Shown here piece by piece: positions 1,887-42,751 of a stretch of 64,000 nucleotides of DNA. Location: sequence record OQ411014.1; one strand, 5' to 3'. The position numbers and the translations under genes were made by a program. The notes beneath the pieces are model-generated. The model was not told the DNA's origin, made no database searches, and saw nothing but the letters and a program-made list of their open reading frames with translations. Within the stretch, counting starts at the first letter, position 1. Every line of letters begins with the position of its first letter.

Positions 1887-2363
1887 ATGTTCGAATTTGA
1901 AGAAGAGATTTATTTTGATCCTTCTGAAGATGGCTATACACACCTAAATGCGTATAGTAAAGGACGTACACGTTTGGGGAGGATGCTATCTAATTTTGCA
2001 TACTCCCCATTTGTGTTTGAGCCGTATGGTCACTTCAAATCGATGGAAGGATTCTGGTACTGGTACTGTACTGGTCAGAAGCATGATATTCTAAGAACCC
2101 TAAGTGGGGCGAAGGCCAAAGCTGAAGGCCAGAAGTTTCCTAGAGTGATTACATCAATGTCCGATGAAGATATCAGTACTATTCAAGATGCTATGGTAGC
2201 GAAGATAGTACAGAATAGTGAAATCAAAGATGCGTTGATGAAGTGTAATCTTGAGATAGTTCATTACTATGTATATGCAGGTAGGGTTGTACGATTAGAC
2301 CAGAAAGATGATTGGTTCGCAGAAACGCTGAACATGATTCGTGATGCATTACAGGGTAAATGA
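1887..2363 (+). CDS. NADAR-like protein (T4 gp30.3-like ADP-ribose hydrolase fold)
   Basis: LSNFAYSPF...F.SMEGFW and LSGAKAKAEG resemble T4 gp30.3 LSNFAQWPF...F..LEGFL and LSGLAAQQAG. Confidence 0.6.
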   Translation: MFEFEEEIYFDPSEDGYTHLNAYSKGRTRLGRMLSNFAYSPFVFEPYGHFKSMEGFWYWYCTGQKHDILRTLSGAKAKAEGQKFPRVITSMSDEDISTIQDAMVAKIVQNSEIKDALMKCNLEIVHYYVYAGRVVRLDQKDDWFAETLNMIRDALQGK

Positions 2364-2389
2364 GATGAAATGAAAAATTGTGATATAAT
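2360..2389 (+). promoter_or_regulatory. class II promoter ATGAGA-18-TATAAT with TGTGA
   Basis: Same architecture at 7 sites in the window. Confidence 0.75.
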
Positions 2390-6245: not shown

Positions 6246-6637
6246 ACATTTACAATGAACTAATTGAACTTGATTTTTTCAAGAATCCAGCCCGTAAGAC
6301 AAGTACTGAATCATTCTTTGAAAAAGAATTCATGATGCATCTAATGTTTGAAGATGAATACAGTGATGATTCAGTGAATAGTATTCTAGTAGTGAAGGAT
6401 TTATCTGAAGGAAATCTCTCACACATCAATGTCAGTACTAATCGCTGTATGCTCCAGTACTCCAATGATACTGGAATGATTGCTATTGTCAGAGCTAATG
6501 TTTCTGAAGATTTATTCGTACCAATAGCGTGTGATGAAGGTCAGTTCTTTCAGCTTATGGTACTGGAGGATTTGGGGAAGATTACACATGAATATGTGAA
6601 ATTAGTTCAAGATGTTTATGCAATTTTGAGCAAATGA
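6239..6637 (+). CDS. family A protein (C-terminal EExFQ motif)
   Basis: DEGQFFQLMVLED. Confidence 0.7.
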   Translation: MLNIYNELIELDFFKNPARKTSTESFFEKEFMMHLMFEDEYSDDSVNSILVVKDLSEGNLSHINVSTNRCMLQYSNDTGMIAIVRANVSEDLFVPIACDEGQFFQLMVLEDLGKITHEYVKLVQDVYAILSK

Positions 6638-6655
6638 AATATATTGTGATATAAT
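6626..6655 (+). promoter_or_regulatory. class II promoter TTGAGC-18-TATAAT
   Basis: TGTGA before -10; shared architecture. Confidence 0.7.
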
Positions 6656-8613: not shown

Positions 8614-8643
8614 TTGAACATTTCAGAAAAAATGTGATATAAT
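8614..8643 (+). promoter_or_regulatory. class II promoter TTGAAC-18-TATAAT for tRNA-Thr
   Basis: TGTGA before -10; followed by 5' hairpin tacaggaga/tctcctgta (8649-8673). Confidence 0.75.
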
Positions 8644-16126: not shown

Positions 16127-16405
16127 ATGCATTTCGAAAAATTCAACGCAAACCGTAACACACGTATTGAAATGTTGTTTGAAACTCAAGATACTATCAG
16201 TATTTGTACTAAGAGTGGTGATGTTTACCATGAATGTACTATTGAGTGGGAACAAGGCCGAACACGTTCTGTTGAGTTTGACAACTACCATTTCAAACAA
16301 GGCGACCGCAAGATCTGGCCTGAACTGGTAGAAAGCATTGCATATGAAGATGAAGATAAAGAATCTTTTATCAAAGAAAATCCAGAAAATGATGAAGATT
16401 TTTGA
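16127..16405 (+). CDS. hypothetical protein
   Basis: AGGA RBS. Confidence 0.65.
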   Translation: MHFEKFNANRNTRIEMLFETQDTISICTKSGDVYHECTIEWEQGRTRSVEFDNYHFKQGDRKIWPELVESIAYEDEDKESFIKENPENDEDF

Positions 16406-16431
16406 GCATTTTGAAGAAAATGTGATATAAT
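16402..16431 (+). promoter_or_regulatory. class II promoter TTGAGC-18-TATAAT for tRNA-Ser/Arg
   Basis: Shared architecture. Confidence 0.75.
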
Positions 16432-28909: not shown

Positions 28910-28939
28910 ATGAGACAAACTGGAAAATTGTGATATAAT
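28910..28939 (+). promoter_or_regulatory. class II promoter ATGAGA-18-TATAAT
   Basis: Shared architecture; followed by a two-hairpin leader (acatc/gatgt, gcgttcaa/ttgaacgc). Confidence 0.75.
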
Positions 28940-31834: not shown

Positions 31835-32170
31835 ATGATGTTAGAACTACTAGAAACAATCCTGTACGCAGCTAGAGCAGAACGATATGATAAACTCGAT
31901 GCACTAGCACCTAAAGTGTTTTATGGTCGAGAAGGTGATGCGATATTGTCCTTTACTATCATGACAGAAGAAAACTTTTCTATCATGATTAGGGCAACAC
32001 ACGTCATTGACTGTCGTTGTAAAAACTGGTCTGACGCAACATTGAAGTACGGTTACAAGGAAGATGAATTCTTCTTAGAATCACTCAAGCGTGAAATACA
32101 TTTTTCCTATGAAGAATATCTACTTGCACAAAAAATTTCAGAAGTTCTAAAAAGACTCGCATATAAATGA
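31835..32170 (+). CDS. family A protein
   Basis: YKEDEFFLESLKRE. Confidence 0.7.
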   Translation: MMLELLETILYAARAERYDKLDALAPKVFYGREGDAILSFTIMTEENFSIMIRATHVIDCRCKNWSDATLKYGYKEDEFFLESLKREIHFSYEEYLLAQKISEVLKRLAYK

Positions 32171-32196
32171 GAAATTTAGGATAAATGTGATATAAT
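32167..32196 (+). promoter_or_regulatory. class II promoter ATGAGA-18-TATAAT
   Basis: Shared architecture. Confidence 0.75.
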
Positions 32197-35788: not shown

Positions 35789-36929
35789 AATCTTTTCCAG
35801 CAATTACGATAGAACCAGCAAACCCATCGAGGGCTGTTAGTACTATATCATCTGCGTCATTAACCTGAACCTGAACAGTACAAACTGATGTACCATCATA
35901 TACAGTATATGACATATTGGATTTACCATGTTGTGCTTTGGTAATAGAAGCACTTGAGGAACCATCACCATTTGGTGTCCATGATAGAGCAGAACGGAAT
36001 GGAACACTTTGAGATGTTTTACCAATAATAACAACAACAGCGGCAGACGCAGCACTTTGTGTAACAGTAATGTTACCACTTGCATCTACGTCTACAGTAC
36101 TGAATTGTACTGCGTCATCTTGAGGTTCATGTAACTGAACAACCAGGTCCGCACCACGTCCGTGAATGATAGCAGGAACAGTAGCTTTGTACTGACCATC
36201 TGATTGTATTGCAAAATCAGCAGGAGCAATGTTGATTGAAGTTACATAGTCAGAATCAGCACCATCTGCATATACAGGGAATTGTACTTGAATTTCATTG
36301 TAATTCGGTGAAGTAATTGTTATAGTAGCTGTACCAGTTTGGGAGATAACCACTGGAGAAATACTGAATGTTCCATCTGGATTAACAGTACCTTCATATT
36401 CAGAACCATCTGGTAGAACAATTTTAACAACCATATCAGTAACGTCTAGAGCACCCGAACTAGAGGTGATAGCACCACTAATTTCAGTATCATTAACGTG
36501 AACTGGATTGATTACGATGTTGTCAATATCTGGTAGAGGGATAGTACATGTAGGTGTGTACATATCATAAAGCGTTTTACCAGTACTGAGAATTATTTTG
36601 TTCAATAGGAAACGAATGACGAAACCTTCCTTGGTCTTTTGATCATTGTAACCCCTTACAAAGAAGGTATTGCGTGGAATCTTAGCCAAGATTTGATCGT
36701 TATTTTCTAGATAATCCAGAACTCTACCCTCGGTGTCATAACCAGTGAGTAGTACTTTTTGATAAATTGTGTTTGTCGCAGGATCAATAAGGTCGAACAT
36801 TACATCAGAACGTTGTTTGTATATACGTAACATCTTTTTCTTTGTAAAGTCTCGCAGATATGCCCCATCAACTACAAATCCACAAACCCCATAAGGATAA
36901 TCCCCAACCCCAGCTATCGGTTTAGCCAT
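35787..36929 (-). CDS. putative virion protein with Ig-like/beta-sandwich domains
   Basis: GGAG RBS before ATG 36929; PVHVNDTEISG...GTVNPDGTFSI resembles bacterial Ig-like repeats; two similar C-terminal H.K/G repeats. Confidence 0.6.
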   Translation of the reverse strand: MAKPIAGVGDYPYGVCGFVVDGAYLRDFTKKKMLRIYKQRSDVMFDLIDPATNTIYQKVLLTGYDTEGRVLDYLENNDQILAKIPRNTFFVRGYNDQKTKEGFVIRFLLNKIILSTGKTLYDMYTPTCTIPLPDIDNIVINPVHVNDTEISGAITSSSGALDVTDMVVKIVLPDGSEYEGTVNPDGTFSISPVVISQTGTATITITSPNYNEIQVQFPVYADGADSDYVTSINIAPADFAIQSDGQYKATVPAIIHGRGADLVVQLHEPQDDAVQFSTVDVDASGNITVTQSAASAAVVVIIGKTSQSVPFRSALSWTPNGDGSSSASITKAQHGKSNMSYTVYDGTSVCTVQVQVNDADDIVLTALDGFAGSIVIAGKD

Positions 36930-37049
36930 AGATAAACTCCTTTTTTTGTTTTTCATTATGAACGTATTTACCCCTTGACATGTGATTATGCTTGTATTAT
37001 GATACATGCATTGATTGACGCACATGTAATAAAGAACATTAAATGTGTG

Positions 37050-37078
37050 TTGACAGTACTGAATGACTGCTCTATAAT
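37050..37078 (+). promoter_or_regulatory. sigma70 promoter TTGACA-17-TATAAT
   Basis: Perfect consensus; AGTACT overlaps -35. Confidence 0.85.
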
Positions 37079-37123
37079 ACTTACATCAACTACGAACTTA
37101 AAGAAACCATAAGGAATACTAAA

Positions 37124-37702
37124 ATGACTACTCGCTTAAAAATCGTTGACAACAAAATGTCCATCAGCCTGTTCAAAGACGAAGCTGATTCTTACATGGC
37201 TAAAGCAATGGCTAAATCACAGCGTTATAACAACATGCTGAATGGTCGTAAAGCTCCTTACGGTCAGAACCACCCACACAGCCACTACGTTGGTATGGTT
37301 GCTGAACACGCTACTTTAGTACTGATGGAAGAAATCGAACAGCTTCTGAACATTGATATGAAAATCGATGCAGTGTTCCTGGACGACAAGCGTGACAAAG
37401 AATGTGATATCGTTGTGAATGGTCTGCGTATTGAAGTAAAATGCATCAAGTACGGTTCATGGGTAAAATTCGGCCCTTGCATTACTGCCGCTCAACGTAA
37501 GAACATTGAACGCAAAGCTGATGTAGTACTGTGGGCTGTATACAACGAACGTAAACAATCCTTTACGTTTGAAGGTTTCAACCGTGTAGAAGACATTGCT
37601 AACATCCCAACTGAAATGACTGGTGTCCAAGGTCGTGAGAAGATCGAAAACCATCCAGTAATGAGTATCATCAAACCTTTACAGGAGATGCAATTTTGCT
37701 AA
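37124..37702 (+). CDS. PD-(D/E)XK nuclease-like protein
   Basis: GMVAE helix, CDIVVNGLRIEVKC (D..EVK), ADVVLWA. Confidence 0.6.
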   Translation: MTTRLKIVDNKMSISLFKDEADSYMAKAMAKSQRYNNMLNGRKAPYGQNHPHSHYVGMVAEHATLVLMEEIEQLLNIDMKIDAVFLDDKRDKECDIVVNGLRIEVKCIKYGSWVKFGPCITAAQRKNIERKADVVLWAVYNERKQSFTFEGFNRVEDIANIPTEMTGVQGREKIENHPVMSIIKPLQEMQFC

Positions 37703-40514: not shown

Positions 40515-40993
40515 TGAAAAACGTACAACAATACATTCAGAACTTCACCGCATATCCAGTATCAGTAATGTTCGGACATATCGATACACCTACTCCTAAG
40601 CAGAAGAAAGCGGAGAAACGTGTAGCAGAAATCTGTGAAGAACTGTATCGTTTTGATTGTACAGTACTATCAGATGTGCGAGCAGCATTCCGCGAGTTAG
40701 ATGTTCTTATCTCCTTGAGTGATGATAAGTTCCGCATCAAGCAAGTGCGTCTAACTCGTATGACTGGTCGTTTGGCATATTTTGTTGACAAAGCGGTTGT
40801 AATGCTCGATAATATGCACAAGAAAGACCAGCAACTTCAGCAGTACTGGCAACCGCTGTCAATGAAAGCTAAAGTACTGAAGGATGAAATCAAATCATTC
40901 CTTATCCAGTACGATACTTCAGTTGATAAGATTGTATTACTGTCTGAATTTGACAATGCATACAAAGAAGCCCAAGAGGAAGATAAGAAATGA
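40514..40993 (+). CDS. helical hypothetical protein
   Basis: TAATG coupling. Confidence 0.7.
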   Translation: MKNVQQYIQNFTAYPVSVMFGHIDTPTPKQKKAEKRVAEICEELYRFDCTVLSDVRAAFRELDVLISLSDDKFRIKQVRLTRMTGRLAYFVDKAVVMLDNMHKKDQQLQQYWQPLSMKAKVLKDEIKSFLIQYDTSVDKIVLLSEFDNAYKEAQEEDKK

Positions 40994-41490
40994 CAACTGT
41001 TTTCGTGAGTAAAGAATTAGGAATTGCTATTACTGACTCACGAGCCACGTTTCAAGAGTCCAGGAAGTTTCTTGGGCTTTTTAACTTGACTCCATTACCA
41101 TCGTATAAAGTTGTGAATCAAAAGGCTTTGTATGTTCATGACCGTTTATTCTTAGCATGTGGAAGTGTAGATACTATTGATAAAGTATTGCAATATTTCA
41201 TCGACGGTACTAAGTTCAAGATAAACAAGAAAACTCCAAGCTGTGAGTGTCTTCTTCTTGGTAAAGAATACGGTGTACACTTGTACGTGTGGAATGGTAA
41301 GATTCATAAGAAGACTATCTTCTTGGCGTATAATTTTGTACACTTCATGGGGTCTGGTAGTTCTGCCCTACTCAGAAAGTACTACAAGACTTTAGAACGT
41401 AATACACCAGATGAAGTTATTGATATTTTCAAGACTGTACATTTGGATGATAGCTTCACTGACGATAACGTAAATTTATACAGAATCTAG
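40990..41490 (+). CDS. Ntn-hydrolase (HslV/proteasome beta-like) protein
   Basis: MTT start, DSRAT, CGS, FMGSGS and D..T near the end. Confidence 0.55.
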   Translation: MTTVFVSKELGIAITDSRATFQESRKFLGLFNLTPLPSYKVVNQKALYVHDRLFLACGSVDTIDKVLQYFIDGTKFKINKKTPSCECLLLGKEYGVHLYVWNGKIHKKTIFLAYNFVHFMGSGSSALLRKYYKTLERNTPDEVIDIFKTVHLDDSFTDDNVNLYRI

Positions 41491-41519
41491 TTGACAGTCT
41501 AAAAGAGATATCATATAAT
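41491..41519 (+). promoter_or_regulatory. sigma70 promoter TTGACA-17-TATAAT
   Basis: Perfect consensus. Confidence 0.85.
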
Positions 41520-41710
41520 CATTGCATACCACAACGAGAGAGAAACAAAATGAGTACATTCATCGTAGAATATGTTCTGACTGGTCAAAGCATCTGGCAG
41601 GTACAAATGGTAAAAGCATGTAATAAAGAGCAAGCCCAGAGCACGCTCAAGAAAATGATTTCTGGTGTAGTAACCACCAAAGCATACCCAGCATAATTTA
41701 GAGCTATAAT

Positions 41711-41739
41711 GAATCCGCTCTGTGCGGATTCTTTTTTTT
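41711..41739 (+). terminator. terminator upstream of the sigma gene
   Basis: gaatccgc/gcggattc plus T8; a TATAAT lies just 5' of it. Confidence 0.8.
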
Positions 41740-41758
41740 AATATCAAAGGAGAAAGTA

Positions 41759-42751
41759 ATGACTGTAAAACAACTCAATCTAGAATCTATTCAAGACGAT
41801 ATCATGGATGAATGTTTTGTAAATGAAAACAATACGTTCGAGCGTATTAGTGAACAGTCACATGACAGTACTGAAGAAGTAGAAGAAAGTACTGATGACG
41901 TAGGTTCTTTCAAGACTTACAACACATCTAGCGTTTTACCAGAAGGTGAGACGAATGAATCTATTATTCGTTTAATCCGTGACGGTATCAATGTGAAGCG
42001 TAACATTGACCTTATCGTACGTAACAACGTAGGCTTAGTATATAGCCAAGCACGTCAGTGTACTTGTAATATCCCATTCCAAGATAAAGCACAGTACGCT
42101 TTTGAAGGTCTAATGCGTGCAATCCATCGTTATGATGTGAATCAGAATATTCTTTTCAGTACTTACGCTACTGTGTCTATTCGCCAAACACTCTATAACT
42201 TTGGTAATGATGAAGTTCGTCTAATCAGTATTCCACGTCACTTGTCAGTGGATAACATCAAGATTCAGAACTACATTGAGAAGCATCGTTCTAAGTTCGG
42301 TCGTACCCCAAGTGAAGATGAAATCAGTACTGCTACTGGCATCAAGTTATCCGCAGTGAAACGTGTAGTGCAGTACATGAACAGTAAGCCAATGAGTTTC
42401 GATACTCCAATGGGTTCTGACAGTACTGAAAACGATATGAGCTTAGTGGATGTAATCCCAGGAACTTCCAATGATTACACACTAAGTGCAGATACAGTTC
42501 AGAAAGCACCACTAGATGTAATTGCATTGGTCATGTCTGAACTACCAGAAGAAGAGCAGTTGCTGATCAATAAGATTCACGGCTTGAATGGACATGAAGA
42601 AAGTACTTTTATTGCTCTAGAGACTGCTGGATTGGTAGATGCGAAGGGTAAGAAGCTAACTAACCGTTGCACTATTCATCGTCGTTACAATGCAATACTG
42701 GATAAGATTCGTAATATTCTAAAAGCACGTGACATTTCATTCGATGACTGA
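41759..42751 (+). CDS. RNA polymerase sigma factor, sigma70 family
   Basis: Region 2 NVGLV, GLMRAIHRYD, FSTYAT.SIRQ, RLISIPRH; region 3 GRTPSEDEIS; region 4 remnants. Confidence 0.9.
   Translation: MTVKQLNLESIQDDIMDECFVNENNTFERISEQSHDSTEEVEESTDDVGSFKTYNTSSVLPEGETNESIIRLIRDGINVKRNIDLIVRNNVGLVYSQARQCTCNIPFQDKAQYAFEGLMRAIHRYDVNQNILFSTYATVSIRQTLYNFGNDEVRLISIPRHLSVDNIKIQNYIEKHRSKFGRTPSEDEISTATGIKLSAVKRVVQYMNSKPMSFDTPMGSDSTENDMSLVDVIPGTSNDYTLSADTVQKAPLDVIALVMSELPEEEQLLINKIHGLNGHEESTFIALETAGLVDAKGKKLTNRCTIHRRYNAILDKIRNILKARDISFDD

Follow-up and report, generated by a model that had tools for sequence, protein, structure and literature searches.

The EJP02_431 gene and its product

The window analysed here, a whole stretch of 64,000 nucleotides, corresponds at 100% identity to bases 248001-312000 of the genome of Escherichia phage EJP2 (OQ411014.1; 349,185 bp), an Asteriusvirus and Rak2-like jumbo myovirus. 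Its sigma-70-family gene, EJP02_431, specifies what is most likely, judging by sequence, a real and working sigma2-sigma3-sigma4 initiation factor of that family, and one which probably serves the middle genes of the phage. The open reading frame (ORF) at 41759-42751 of the plus strand has a product 100% identical to EJP02_431, annotated as 'RNA polymerase sigma factor', and its coordinates and length of 330 amino acids (aa) are exactly those given in a first-pass annotation made from the letters of the DNA. Positions below are those of the window, except where the EJP2 record is named; for genome-wide scans the whole record was reassembled from annotated 50-kb stretches. The parts of the gene are listed below, with model confidence given as the predicted local distance difference test score (pLDDT) of an AlphaFold (AF2) model and HTH standing for helix-turn-helix.

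41759..42751, plus strand: sigma-70-family gene EJP02_431, 330 aa plus stop (ORF and translation)
41759..41833, plus strand: conserved N-terminal peptide, aa 1-25, LNLESIxEEVLDECF (16 homologues)
41834..41944, plus strand: acidic disordered linker, aa 26-62, in place of regions 1.1/1.2 (10 D+E against 2 K+R; conservation 0.45; pLDDT <50)
41945..42208, plus strand: sigma-2 domain, aa 63-150, regions 2.1-2.4 (Pfam r2; helices 66-148 at pLDDT 70-83)
42173..42178, plus strand: codons V139 and S140, the positions of sigma70 W433/W434 (alignment with RpoD and RpoS)
42248..42388, plus strand: sigma-3 domain, aa 164-210 (Pfam r3; helices 164-208)
42389..42508, plus strand: region 3.2-like linker or sigma finger, aa 211-250 (invariant S213, D215, T216, P217)
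42509..42727, plus strand: sigma-4 domain, aa 251-323, four helices (AF2 helices 251-261, 264-274, 284-290, 303-323)
42629..42652, plus strand: 8-residue insertion GLVDAKGK, aa 291-298, in the HTH turn of region 4.2 (profile-profile and MAFFT alignments agree)
42656..42724, plus strand: recognition helix of region 4.2, aa 300-322, rewritten relative to TRERIRQ (alignments)

Pfam recognised Sigma70_r2 (PF04542; 36.3 bits against a cut-off of 24, residues 87-148) and Sigma70_r3 (PF04539; 34.2 bits against 25.3, residues 168-236), and in PHROGs the protein falls in phrog_351, 'RNA polymerase sigma factor' (E = 8e-51). Full-length similarity to the sigmas of Rak2-like phages places it in that clade, and tblastn returned 72 phage records at a query coverage of at least 80%. 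The best NCBIfam model was RpoD_Cterm (94.6 bits, cut-off 354), with cyanobacterial RpoD, SigF (81 bits), SigB, RpoS, SigBFG (70) and FliA/WhiG (68) as runners-up. Since the cut-off was reached for none of the 25 listed models (RpoD/RpoS/SigF/FliA equivalogs and subfamilies), all scores being far below, EJP02_431 is placed between group 2 and group 3 sigma factors and outside the curated subfamilies. Its top PDB sequence matches are SigA, SigB, RpoD and RpoS (E about 1e-16). The AF2 model, built from a 16-sequence alignment, has a mean pLDDT of 62 (70-83 in the domains), and Foldseek matched it best to sigmaS and sigmaA chains over about 270 columns.

The protein was aligned by MAFFT with E. 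coli RpoD, RpoS, FliA and RpoH (NC_000913.3), the sigmas of seven other Rak2-like phages and two Vibrio jumbo-phage sigmas. FSTYAT..IRQ aligns with RpoD 427-437, and the retained motifs include Y136 (= Y430), R142/Q143 (= R436/Q437), P159/H161 (= P453/H455) and SxDTP. The last lies in the sigma finger, where SFDTPMG aligns with SMETPIG of RpoD; the finger linker is disordered in the model of the free sigma.

Residues 133-143 read FSTYATVSIRQ where E. coli RpoD and RpoS have FSTYATWWIRQ, which confirms the loss of the tryptophan dyad (W-dyad) reported in the first-pass annotation and sets V139/S140 on W433/W434. The annotation had also proposed that the conservation of VS be examined in homologues. 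The wedge pair is VS, NV, AS, TS, TA or AA in 16 of 16 database homologues and TA, TT, AS or SS in seven further Rak2-like phages, so that the pair itself varies while a tryptophan occurs at neither position in any of the roughly 24 Rak2-like jumbo-phage homologues. Across the sequences compared the W-free state of EJP02_431 is clade-wide and no chance substitution. A more distant Vibrio-phage homologue retains one W (YAWTWIKQ).

FliA reads YAVQRIRG and RpoH FAVHWIKA, with QR and HW, respectively, at the dyad. Loss of the W-dyad is normal among alternative sigmas and unremarkable on its own; to treat it as exceptional was an overstatement, and that view was rejected because FliA and other alternative sigmas share the loss. 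Promoter melting is less efficient with wedge residues other than tryptophan, and alternative sigmas are thereby stringent (PMC4593229, PMC10216364). In work on sigma32 the activity of the wedge pair followed the order WW > HW > QR (PMC10216364), and bulky hydrophobic wedge residues are favoured (PMC10216364, PMC4593229). Set against this published preference, the small V/S pair is a slightly unusual feature.

Region 2.2, the most conserved block of the clade with a majority fraction of 0.89 (0.74 for region 2.3-2.4), occupies aa 106-118 (window 42074-42112) and reads PFQDKxQYxFEGL against QFLDLIQEGNIGL in sigma70, with E407 replaced by Y113 and N409 by F115. Region 2.2 is the main contact of sigma70 with the beta' clamp helices, and the changes may point to an altered core interface; the E407 and N409 positions differ in FliA as well.

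At E <= 10 the Sigma70_r4 model (PF04545) matched neither EJP02_431 nor any other part of the 349-kb genome. When profiles were compared by hhalign, the phage C-termini aligned with cellular sigma-4 at a probability of 96.4% (E = 1.4e-9), and by this comparison the C-terminal domain of EJP02_431 is homologous to cellular sigma-4. The insertion in the HTH turn corresponds to a gap in RpoD, RpoS, FliA, RpoH, P0022 and the second Vibrio-phage sigma. Among the 16 homologues its residues G291 and D294 never vary and G297 hardly does; the insertion is modelled as a loop with one beta-bridge, at a low-confidence pLDDT of about 69. The recognition helix follows, with TNRCTIHRRYNAIL as residues 301-314. 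R584 corresponds to R303, E585 to C304, R586 to T305, R588 to H307 and Q589 to R308, leaving R584 alone unchanged. The alignment thus upholds the earlier description of a rewritten -35 helix, the register of which was off by one residue in the same helix, and adds the eight-residue insertion, which had been overlooked. R308, Y310 and R318 are invariant in the 16 database homologues; departures occur outside that set, in RaK2 (Y308, F310, K318) and PBECO4 (K318), and R303/H307 become K/S in the CBB/BF/XbC2 lineage. With a conservation of 0.61 the helix is on a par with other structured regions.

At the other end of the protein, residues 1-62 hold 16 D+E against 3 K+R, are predicted to be disordered (pLDDT <50) and gave no Pfam r1_1 or r1_2 match for regions 1.1 and 1.2. 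This bears out the short acidic stretch described in place of region 1.1, to which a conserved 25-residue peptide can now be added (mean majority fraction 0.73; L6, L8, I11, E18, C19 and F20 invariant in the 16 homologues; a short helix, 8-20, at low pLDDT). Since the first 25 residues are strongly conserved, the acidic N-terminus appears to be more than filler.

Promoter classes of EJP2 and the -35 box across lineages

Promoters were surveyed by counting hexamers at a fixed distance upstream of every TATAAT, after which the second class was defined by an iterated weight matrix (position weight matrix, PWM). Three signals emerged, TTGACA, a long element of the terminal regions and TGAGAC/TGAGAT, and the spaced-motif census upstream of TATAAT revealed no fourth promoter class. 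Three classes are distinguished in EJP2: host-type TTGACA/TATAAT promoters, TGAGAC-N17-TATAAT promoters, designated class B here (class II in the first-pass annotation), and ATAAATA late sites.

Host-type TTGACA-N16-18-TATAAT promoters number 34 perfect copies and 114 with at most one mismatch on the plus strand of the whole genome, as compared to eight on the minus strand, and the near-consensus sites are spread along the entire plus strand, beyond the early block. Class B has the consensus wwwTGAGAC(A)-N13-TG(A)TATAAT(A), in which TGAGAC lies 17 bp from the extended -10. The weight matrix located about 29 such sites genome-wide, all of them on the plus strand and none on the minus strand. 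Every intergenic TGAGACA is followed 13 nt downstream by TGnTATAAT, the extended -10 being essentially invariant. In the window the strict pattern was expected 0.02 times and observed twice, and the PWM places six class B sites there, the TG of their extended -10 lying at 2381, 6647, 8635, 16423, 28931 and 32188.

2361..2389, plus strand: class B promoter, candidate sigma target, before a copy of a large non-coding RNA (PWM scan)
6627..6655, plus strand: class B promoter, TTGAGCA ... TGTGATATAAT (PWM scan, sequence read)
8615..8643, plus strand: class B promoter, TTGAACA ... TGTGATATAAT (PWM scan)
16403..16431, plus strand: class B promoter, TTGAGCA ... TGTGATATAAT (PWM scan)
28911..28939, plus strand: class B promoter with the top score in the genome, TGAGACA-N13-TGATATAAT (PWM scan, pattern)
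32168..32196, plus strand: class B promoter before a small RNA candidate (PWM scan)

According to the annotation tables, the genes directly downstream of class B sites include the gp55-like sigma with gp47/gp46, a small ORF with DNA polymerase, a gp45-like clamp, RNaseH/5'-3' exonuclease, a single-stranded-DNA-binding gene (two sites), primase-helicase, DHFR/RNase HI/RecD helicase, gyrase B, the clamp-loader block, the thymidylate-synthase block, and glutaredoxin, ClpA and a ClpP-like gene; several ORF-free stretches are also preceded by such sites. The third motif, ATAAATA, is found about 40-60 nt upstream of structural genes on both strands (e.g. 179455, 172299, 109286 and, on the minus strand, 165546 of the EJP2 record), and these sites are presumed to be gp55-like late promoters. 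For phage CBB the same three motif classes have been predicted, the second of them, 'TGAAACG plus TATA', preceding genes of DNA synthesis and the gp55-like gene, and ATAAATA late promoters are predicted for CBB and GAP32 (PMC5259590). The CBB form of the box, TGAAACG-N-TATAAT, has no occurrence in the window, the box of EJP2 being TGAGAC.

The 43-kb region from gp55 to the helicase was compared, together with the sigma gene, in CBB, BF, XbC2, PBECO4, Ecwhy_1, fENko-Kae01 (Kae01), RaK2 and Vibrio phage 2.275.O. Orthologous class B promoters precede the same genes in CBB, PBECO4 and RaK2, and the -35 hexamer always stands about 17 bp from TATAAT. The hexamer itself changes, from TGAGAC in EJP2 to TGGGAC(A) in PBECO4, Ecwhy_1 and Kae01, TG(A/G)AACG in CBB, BF and XbC2, and TGAAC(A/G) in RaK2. 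The recognition helix reads R-x-x-x-H-R-x-Y in EJP2, Kae01, PBECO4 and Ecwhy_1 ('G-type', box TGrGAC(A)), the sigmas of which are about 36-42% identical to that of EJP2, and K-A-T-L-S-R-R-Y in CBB, BF and XbC2 ('A-type', TGrAACG). The RaK2 helix, R-G-T-L-H-Y-K-F, is the sole one that changes the otherwise invariant R308/Y310, and it accompanies the box TGAAC(A/G). Helix and box therefore vary in parallel, as predicted if the recognition helix reads the box directly; this co-variation is suggestive of direct read-out, but it is not proof. In Vibrio phage 2.275.O, the most distant relative compared, TGTTATAAT boxes are present with no clear -35 consensus.

The same virus (2.275.O._10N.286.54.E11) has two sigma-70-family genes. 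The product of one, L025 (399 aa), is canonical, with WW and a TTKTTIQRFESK helix; that of the other, L024 (371 aa), is related to the EJP2 type; it reads YAWTWIKQ, has part of the HTH insertion and carries a C-terminal extension resembling a second sigma-4.1-like repeat.

Three further observations concern the promoters of EJP2. Many of the perfect and near-perfect host-type promoters hold GTACTG/AGTACT in the spacer, and AGTACT is strikingly frequent in the vicinity of early promoters. The terminal-region element, AAAAAGTACTTGCAyAGTACTGA...GCGTATAATGTTTTA (in full AAAAAGTACTTGCAyAGTACTGAwAAAAGCGTATAATGTTTTAyAT), is present roughly 30 times in the EJP2 record, at 0-9 kb and 338-349 kb, and downstream of each copy come a GGGGGAA...TTCCCCC hairpin and a small ORF; these elements are probably immediate-early promoters at both genome ends. 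Lastly, the class B sites at 36759, 90693 and 170492 of the record are followed by ORF-free gaps of about 700 bp (36736-37477, 90666-91355 and 170485-171206), which may represent further copies of the large structured RNA.

Surroundings of the sigma gene

EJP02_431 is embedded in a block of small genes annotated without function and rich in perfect TTGACA-17-TATAAT promoters. Within the window such perfect sigma70-type promoters begin at 37050, 40196, 41491 and 46723. The elements directly upstream of it are as follows.

41491..41519, plus strand: perfect sigma70-type promoter, TTGACA-17-TATAAT, predicted to drive the 48-aa ORF and, by read-through, the sigma gene
41550..41696, plus strand: conserved 48-aa ORF EJP02_430 (MSTFIVEYVL...), directly upstream of the sigma gene (ORF, annotation)
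41711..41739, plus strand: intrinsic terminator-like hairpin followed by T8, 19 bp before the sigma start codon (sequence)
41747..41753, plus strand: ribosome-binding site AAGGAGA of the sigma gene (sequence read)

Metagenomic relatives encode protein-level homologues of EJP02_430 at the corresponding position, where the CBB/BF/XbC2 lineage has a small ORF of comparable length. An equivalent hairpin and T-run precedes the sigma gene in Kae01, BF, CBB, RaK2, XbC2 and the metagenomic contig L032, and an imperfect one in contig L031; no terminator is present before the sigma gene in PBECO4 or Ecwhy_1. The cassette of small ORF and terminator might serve for attenuation, or else the sigma might have a partner in the small protein. 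Upstream again, EJP02_429 (40990-41490; 166 aa; phrog_24804; no Pfam match) has a homologue preceding the sigma gene in PBECO4, Ecwhy_1, RaK2 and Kae01, and could be functionally linked to the sigma.

Pfam and PHROG scans assigned no function to the neighbouring genes and recognised no regulator or anti-sigma among them. Pfam found no second Sigma70_r2 gene in the 349-kb EJP2 genome, the one match being EJP02_431 itself. The best match to AsiA (PF09010) in that genome scored 13.5 bits, which is under the cut-off, and contains stop codons; MotA (PF09114) had no match there. The gp55-like late sigma is EJP02_240 (phrog_12791, E = 5.9e-148), located in the T4-like order gp55-gp47-gp46.

Proposed role and relation to known systems

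Taken together, the sequence evidence makes it reasonably probable that EJP02_431 is the middle-gene sigma of a cascade leading from host sigma70 through the phage sigma to gp55. Host sigma70 would read the TTGACA-type promoters and make EJP02_431 early, a timing which follows from the position of the gene in a block of perfect sigma70 promoters, and the upstream terminator may temper its level. In CBB the sigma gene likewise lies in the presumed early region (PMC5259590). EJP02_431 would then replace sigma70 on the core of E. coli RNA polymerase (RNAP) and guide it to the class B promoters, turning on the genes of replication, recombination and nucleotide metabolism, several RNAs and the gp55-like sigma EJP02_240, which in turn would read the ATAAATA late promoters. 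At the promoter the TGAGAC box would be read by the rewritten helix (R303, H307, R308 and Y310), to which the basic insertion of the HTH turn may contribute. The small V139/S140 pair would confer a low melting capacity, offset by an obligatory near-consensus extended -10, so that the factor would be highly stringent; the acidic N-terminus may play a role like that of region 1.1.

In the published view, sigmas that lack a W-dyad melt less well and so demand near-consensus promoters, and the near-invariant extended -10 of class B is in keeping with this. The three promoter classes match neatly the three sigma-type proteins, host sigma70, EJP02_431 and the gp55-like sigma. A stringent, weakly melting sigma acting on the class II promoters was one of two possibilities raised in the first-pass annotation. 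The stringency it proposed agrees with the roughly 29 sites, the invariant TGnTATAAT and the co-varying -35 box; the connection of these sites with the sigma is the part that we infer.

Several points weigh against this assignment. With an 18-bp spacer wTGAGA fits TTGACA at 4-5 of 6 positions, and since class B sites resemble good sigma70 extended -10 promoters, host sigma70 could fire them unaided. Only two or three independent lineage splits underlie the co-variation of helix and box, so that shared ancestry could produce it, and two metagenomic lineages with H303 gave one class B site each within reach of the sigma gene (TGGGAT and TGGTAA), too few to link a residue to a base. The sigma70 reader of the extended -10, E458, aligns with V164 of EJP02_431. 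The equivalent of Q437, which reads -12, is not kept throughout the clade, IRQ becoming IYM/VYM in PBECO4, Ecwhy_1 and RaK2, where the -10 boxes are still TGnTATAAT. Finally, the structure model of EJP02_431, at the mean pLDDT given above, is mediocre.

An alternative which appears unlikely is that EJP02_431 substitutes for sigma70 with the same -10 specificity, keeping transcription going after the phage has disabled or outcompeted sigma70. Host sigma70 would already read class B as extended -10 promoters. The rewritten region 4 of the phage sigma, with its insertion, would be immune to an inhibitor aimed at region 4 or independent of the -35 element, and timing would derive from the shut-off of sigma70 and not from discrimination between promoters. 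The residues that read the -10 are indeed mostly kept (Y136, R142, Q143), and the 114 near-consensus sigma70 promoters (34 perfect) extend over the whole plus strand. Extended -10 promoters require no -35 element, and class B, with its consensus TGnTATAAT, is of this type. However, the -35 box of class B is strongly conserved at a fixed spacing and shifts between lineages with the helix, which would be unexpected if the -35 element were irrelevant; in addition, no AsiA-like gene was found in the genome and no candidate inhibitor was recognised.

It is distinctly improbable that host sigma70 serves class B with the help of a phage activator binding TGAGAC, in the manner of MotA of T4, and that EJP02_431 serves another promoter set. 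The middle promoters of T4, in which a -10 is combined with an activator box replacing the -35, are a precedent, and most of the early genes around the sigma gene have no assigned function; in CBB, a transcriptional regulator was noted two genes from the sigma gene (PMC5259590). Against this, the EJP2 genome has no MotA or AsiA homologue, the box lies where a sigma-4 domain canonically reads the -35, at 17-bp spacing, and the TATAAT census holds no fourth promoter class, its three classes pairing with three sigma-type proteins.

The other possibility of the first-pass annotation, a defective sigma that sequesters core RNAP and shuts off host transcription with no initiation of its own, can be set aside as very improbable. 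In its favour, the wedge tryptophans are gone, two core-binding residues of region 2.2 differ (E407 to Y113, N409 to F115) and the Pfam model of region 4 has no match. Against it, parts that serve in reading DNA and in initiation, which a decoy could spare, are under purifying selection (R308, Y310 and R318 of the recognition helix, the SxDTP sigma finger, Y136), region 2.3-2.4 (0.74) and the recognition helix (0.61) are conserved like other structured regions, a cognate-looking promoter class co-varies with the helix, and FliA, which is functional, also lacks the W-dyad and differs at E407/N409.

A wider proposal, which appears rather unlikely, is that the Rak2-like phage sigmas form an undescribed sigma-70 subgroup with a distinct initiation mechanism. 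In it a small wedge would open the -12/-11 junction by way of an obligatory extended -10, the basic, glycine-framed insertion and the helix would read TGrGAC/TGrAAC as a new -35 box, region 4 would be insensitive to the silencing of sigma70, and the N-terminal peptide and the 48-aa ORF with its terminator would act as dedicated regulators.

Rak2-like jumbo phages (EJP2, PBECO4/121Q, RaK2, CBB, Munch and others) have been isolated widely as candidates for therapy and carry no RNA polymerase of their own. To our knowledge their transcription programme has never been dissected. Assigning class B to EJP02_431 yields a concrete, testable cascade in three steps (sigma70, phage sigma, gp55-like sigma). 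The clade also offers natural experiments on how far the wedge residues can shrink when the -10 is perfect and extended, and on how an HTH with an enlarged turn re-specifies the -35 element. If the read-out is as proposed, the pairs of helix and box (R..H with TGrGAC, K..S with TGrAAC) would provide a compact orthogonal set of sigmas and promoters for E. coli.

Jumbo phages without an RNAP are thought to use RpoD-like sigma homologues on the host RNAP (PMC7824862, PMC13282480), and the EJP2 paper merely lists the sigma gene (PMC10213699). The literature searched contained no experimental study of the Rak2-like sigma clade and no description of the missing W-dyad, the HTH insertion or the N-terminal peptide in these sigmas.

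By sequence and fold the closest known proteins are E. coli RpoD and RpoS, with which EJP02_431 shares the FSTYAT..IRQ core, region 3.0 (IPxH), the sigma finger and a four-helix sigma-4; its likely -10 is, as theirs, TATAAT with TG. Unlike them it is without region 1.1, region 1.2 and the non-conserved region, and W433/W434 are replaced by V/S. Compared to RpoD, region 2.2 is QDKxQYxFEGL instead of LDLIQEGNIGL, the HTH carries an insertion, and E585/R586/R588/Q589 have become C/T/H/R. EJP02_431 does not carry the marks of a group 1 sigma (W-dyad, regions 1.1/1.2 and the full RERxRQ set, R584-Q589, which reads TTGACA). It resembles the group 3 sigmas (FliA/sigma28, SigF/SigB) in size (about 240-330 aa), in the arrangement sigma2-sigma3-sigma4 without region 1.1, in the lack of a W-dyad and in the stringency for near-consensus promoters to be expected of it (PMC4593229). 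It differs from that group in retaining the group-1/2-like FSTYAT and IRQ with a TATAAT-type -10, and in its small wedge residues, HTH insertion and acidic N-terminal peptide.

Among phage systems, the middle-gene sigma gp36 of coliphage phiEco32 follows a like logic. So does gp28 of the Bacillus phage SPO1, an early phage sigma by which the host core RNAP is turned to middle promoters in a sigma cascade (PMC13401047). Both of these proteins are small and very divergent, whereas EJP02_431 is RpoD-like in sigma-2 and sigma-3 and its proposed targets have sigma70-like geometry and -10. With T4, EJP2 shares the gp55-gp47-gp46 synteny, a gp23-type capsid, ATAAATA late motifs and middle promoters that combine a sigma70-type -10 with a different upstream box; it differs from the T4 middle mode in lacking AsiA/MotA, in having the box at -35 (17-bp spacing) and not at -30, and in possessing a complete extra sigma gene instead. 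The 'divergent RpoD-like' promoters of CBB and GAP32 (TGAAACG plus TATA) are the same class before the same replication genes and gp55-like gene, with TGAGAC(A) as the box in EJP2; in its available excerpts the CBB report neither assigns the class to a sigma nor describes the W-dyad or region 4 (PMC5259590). EJP02_431 is, then, an ordinary kind of phage switch of uncommon construction, for which the gene annotation and the idea of a sigma acting on host RNAP were already known.

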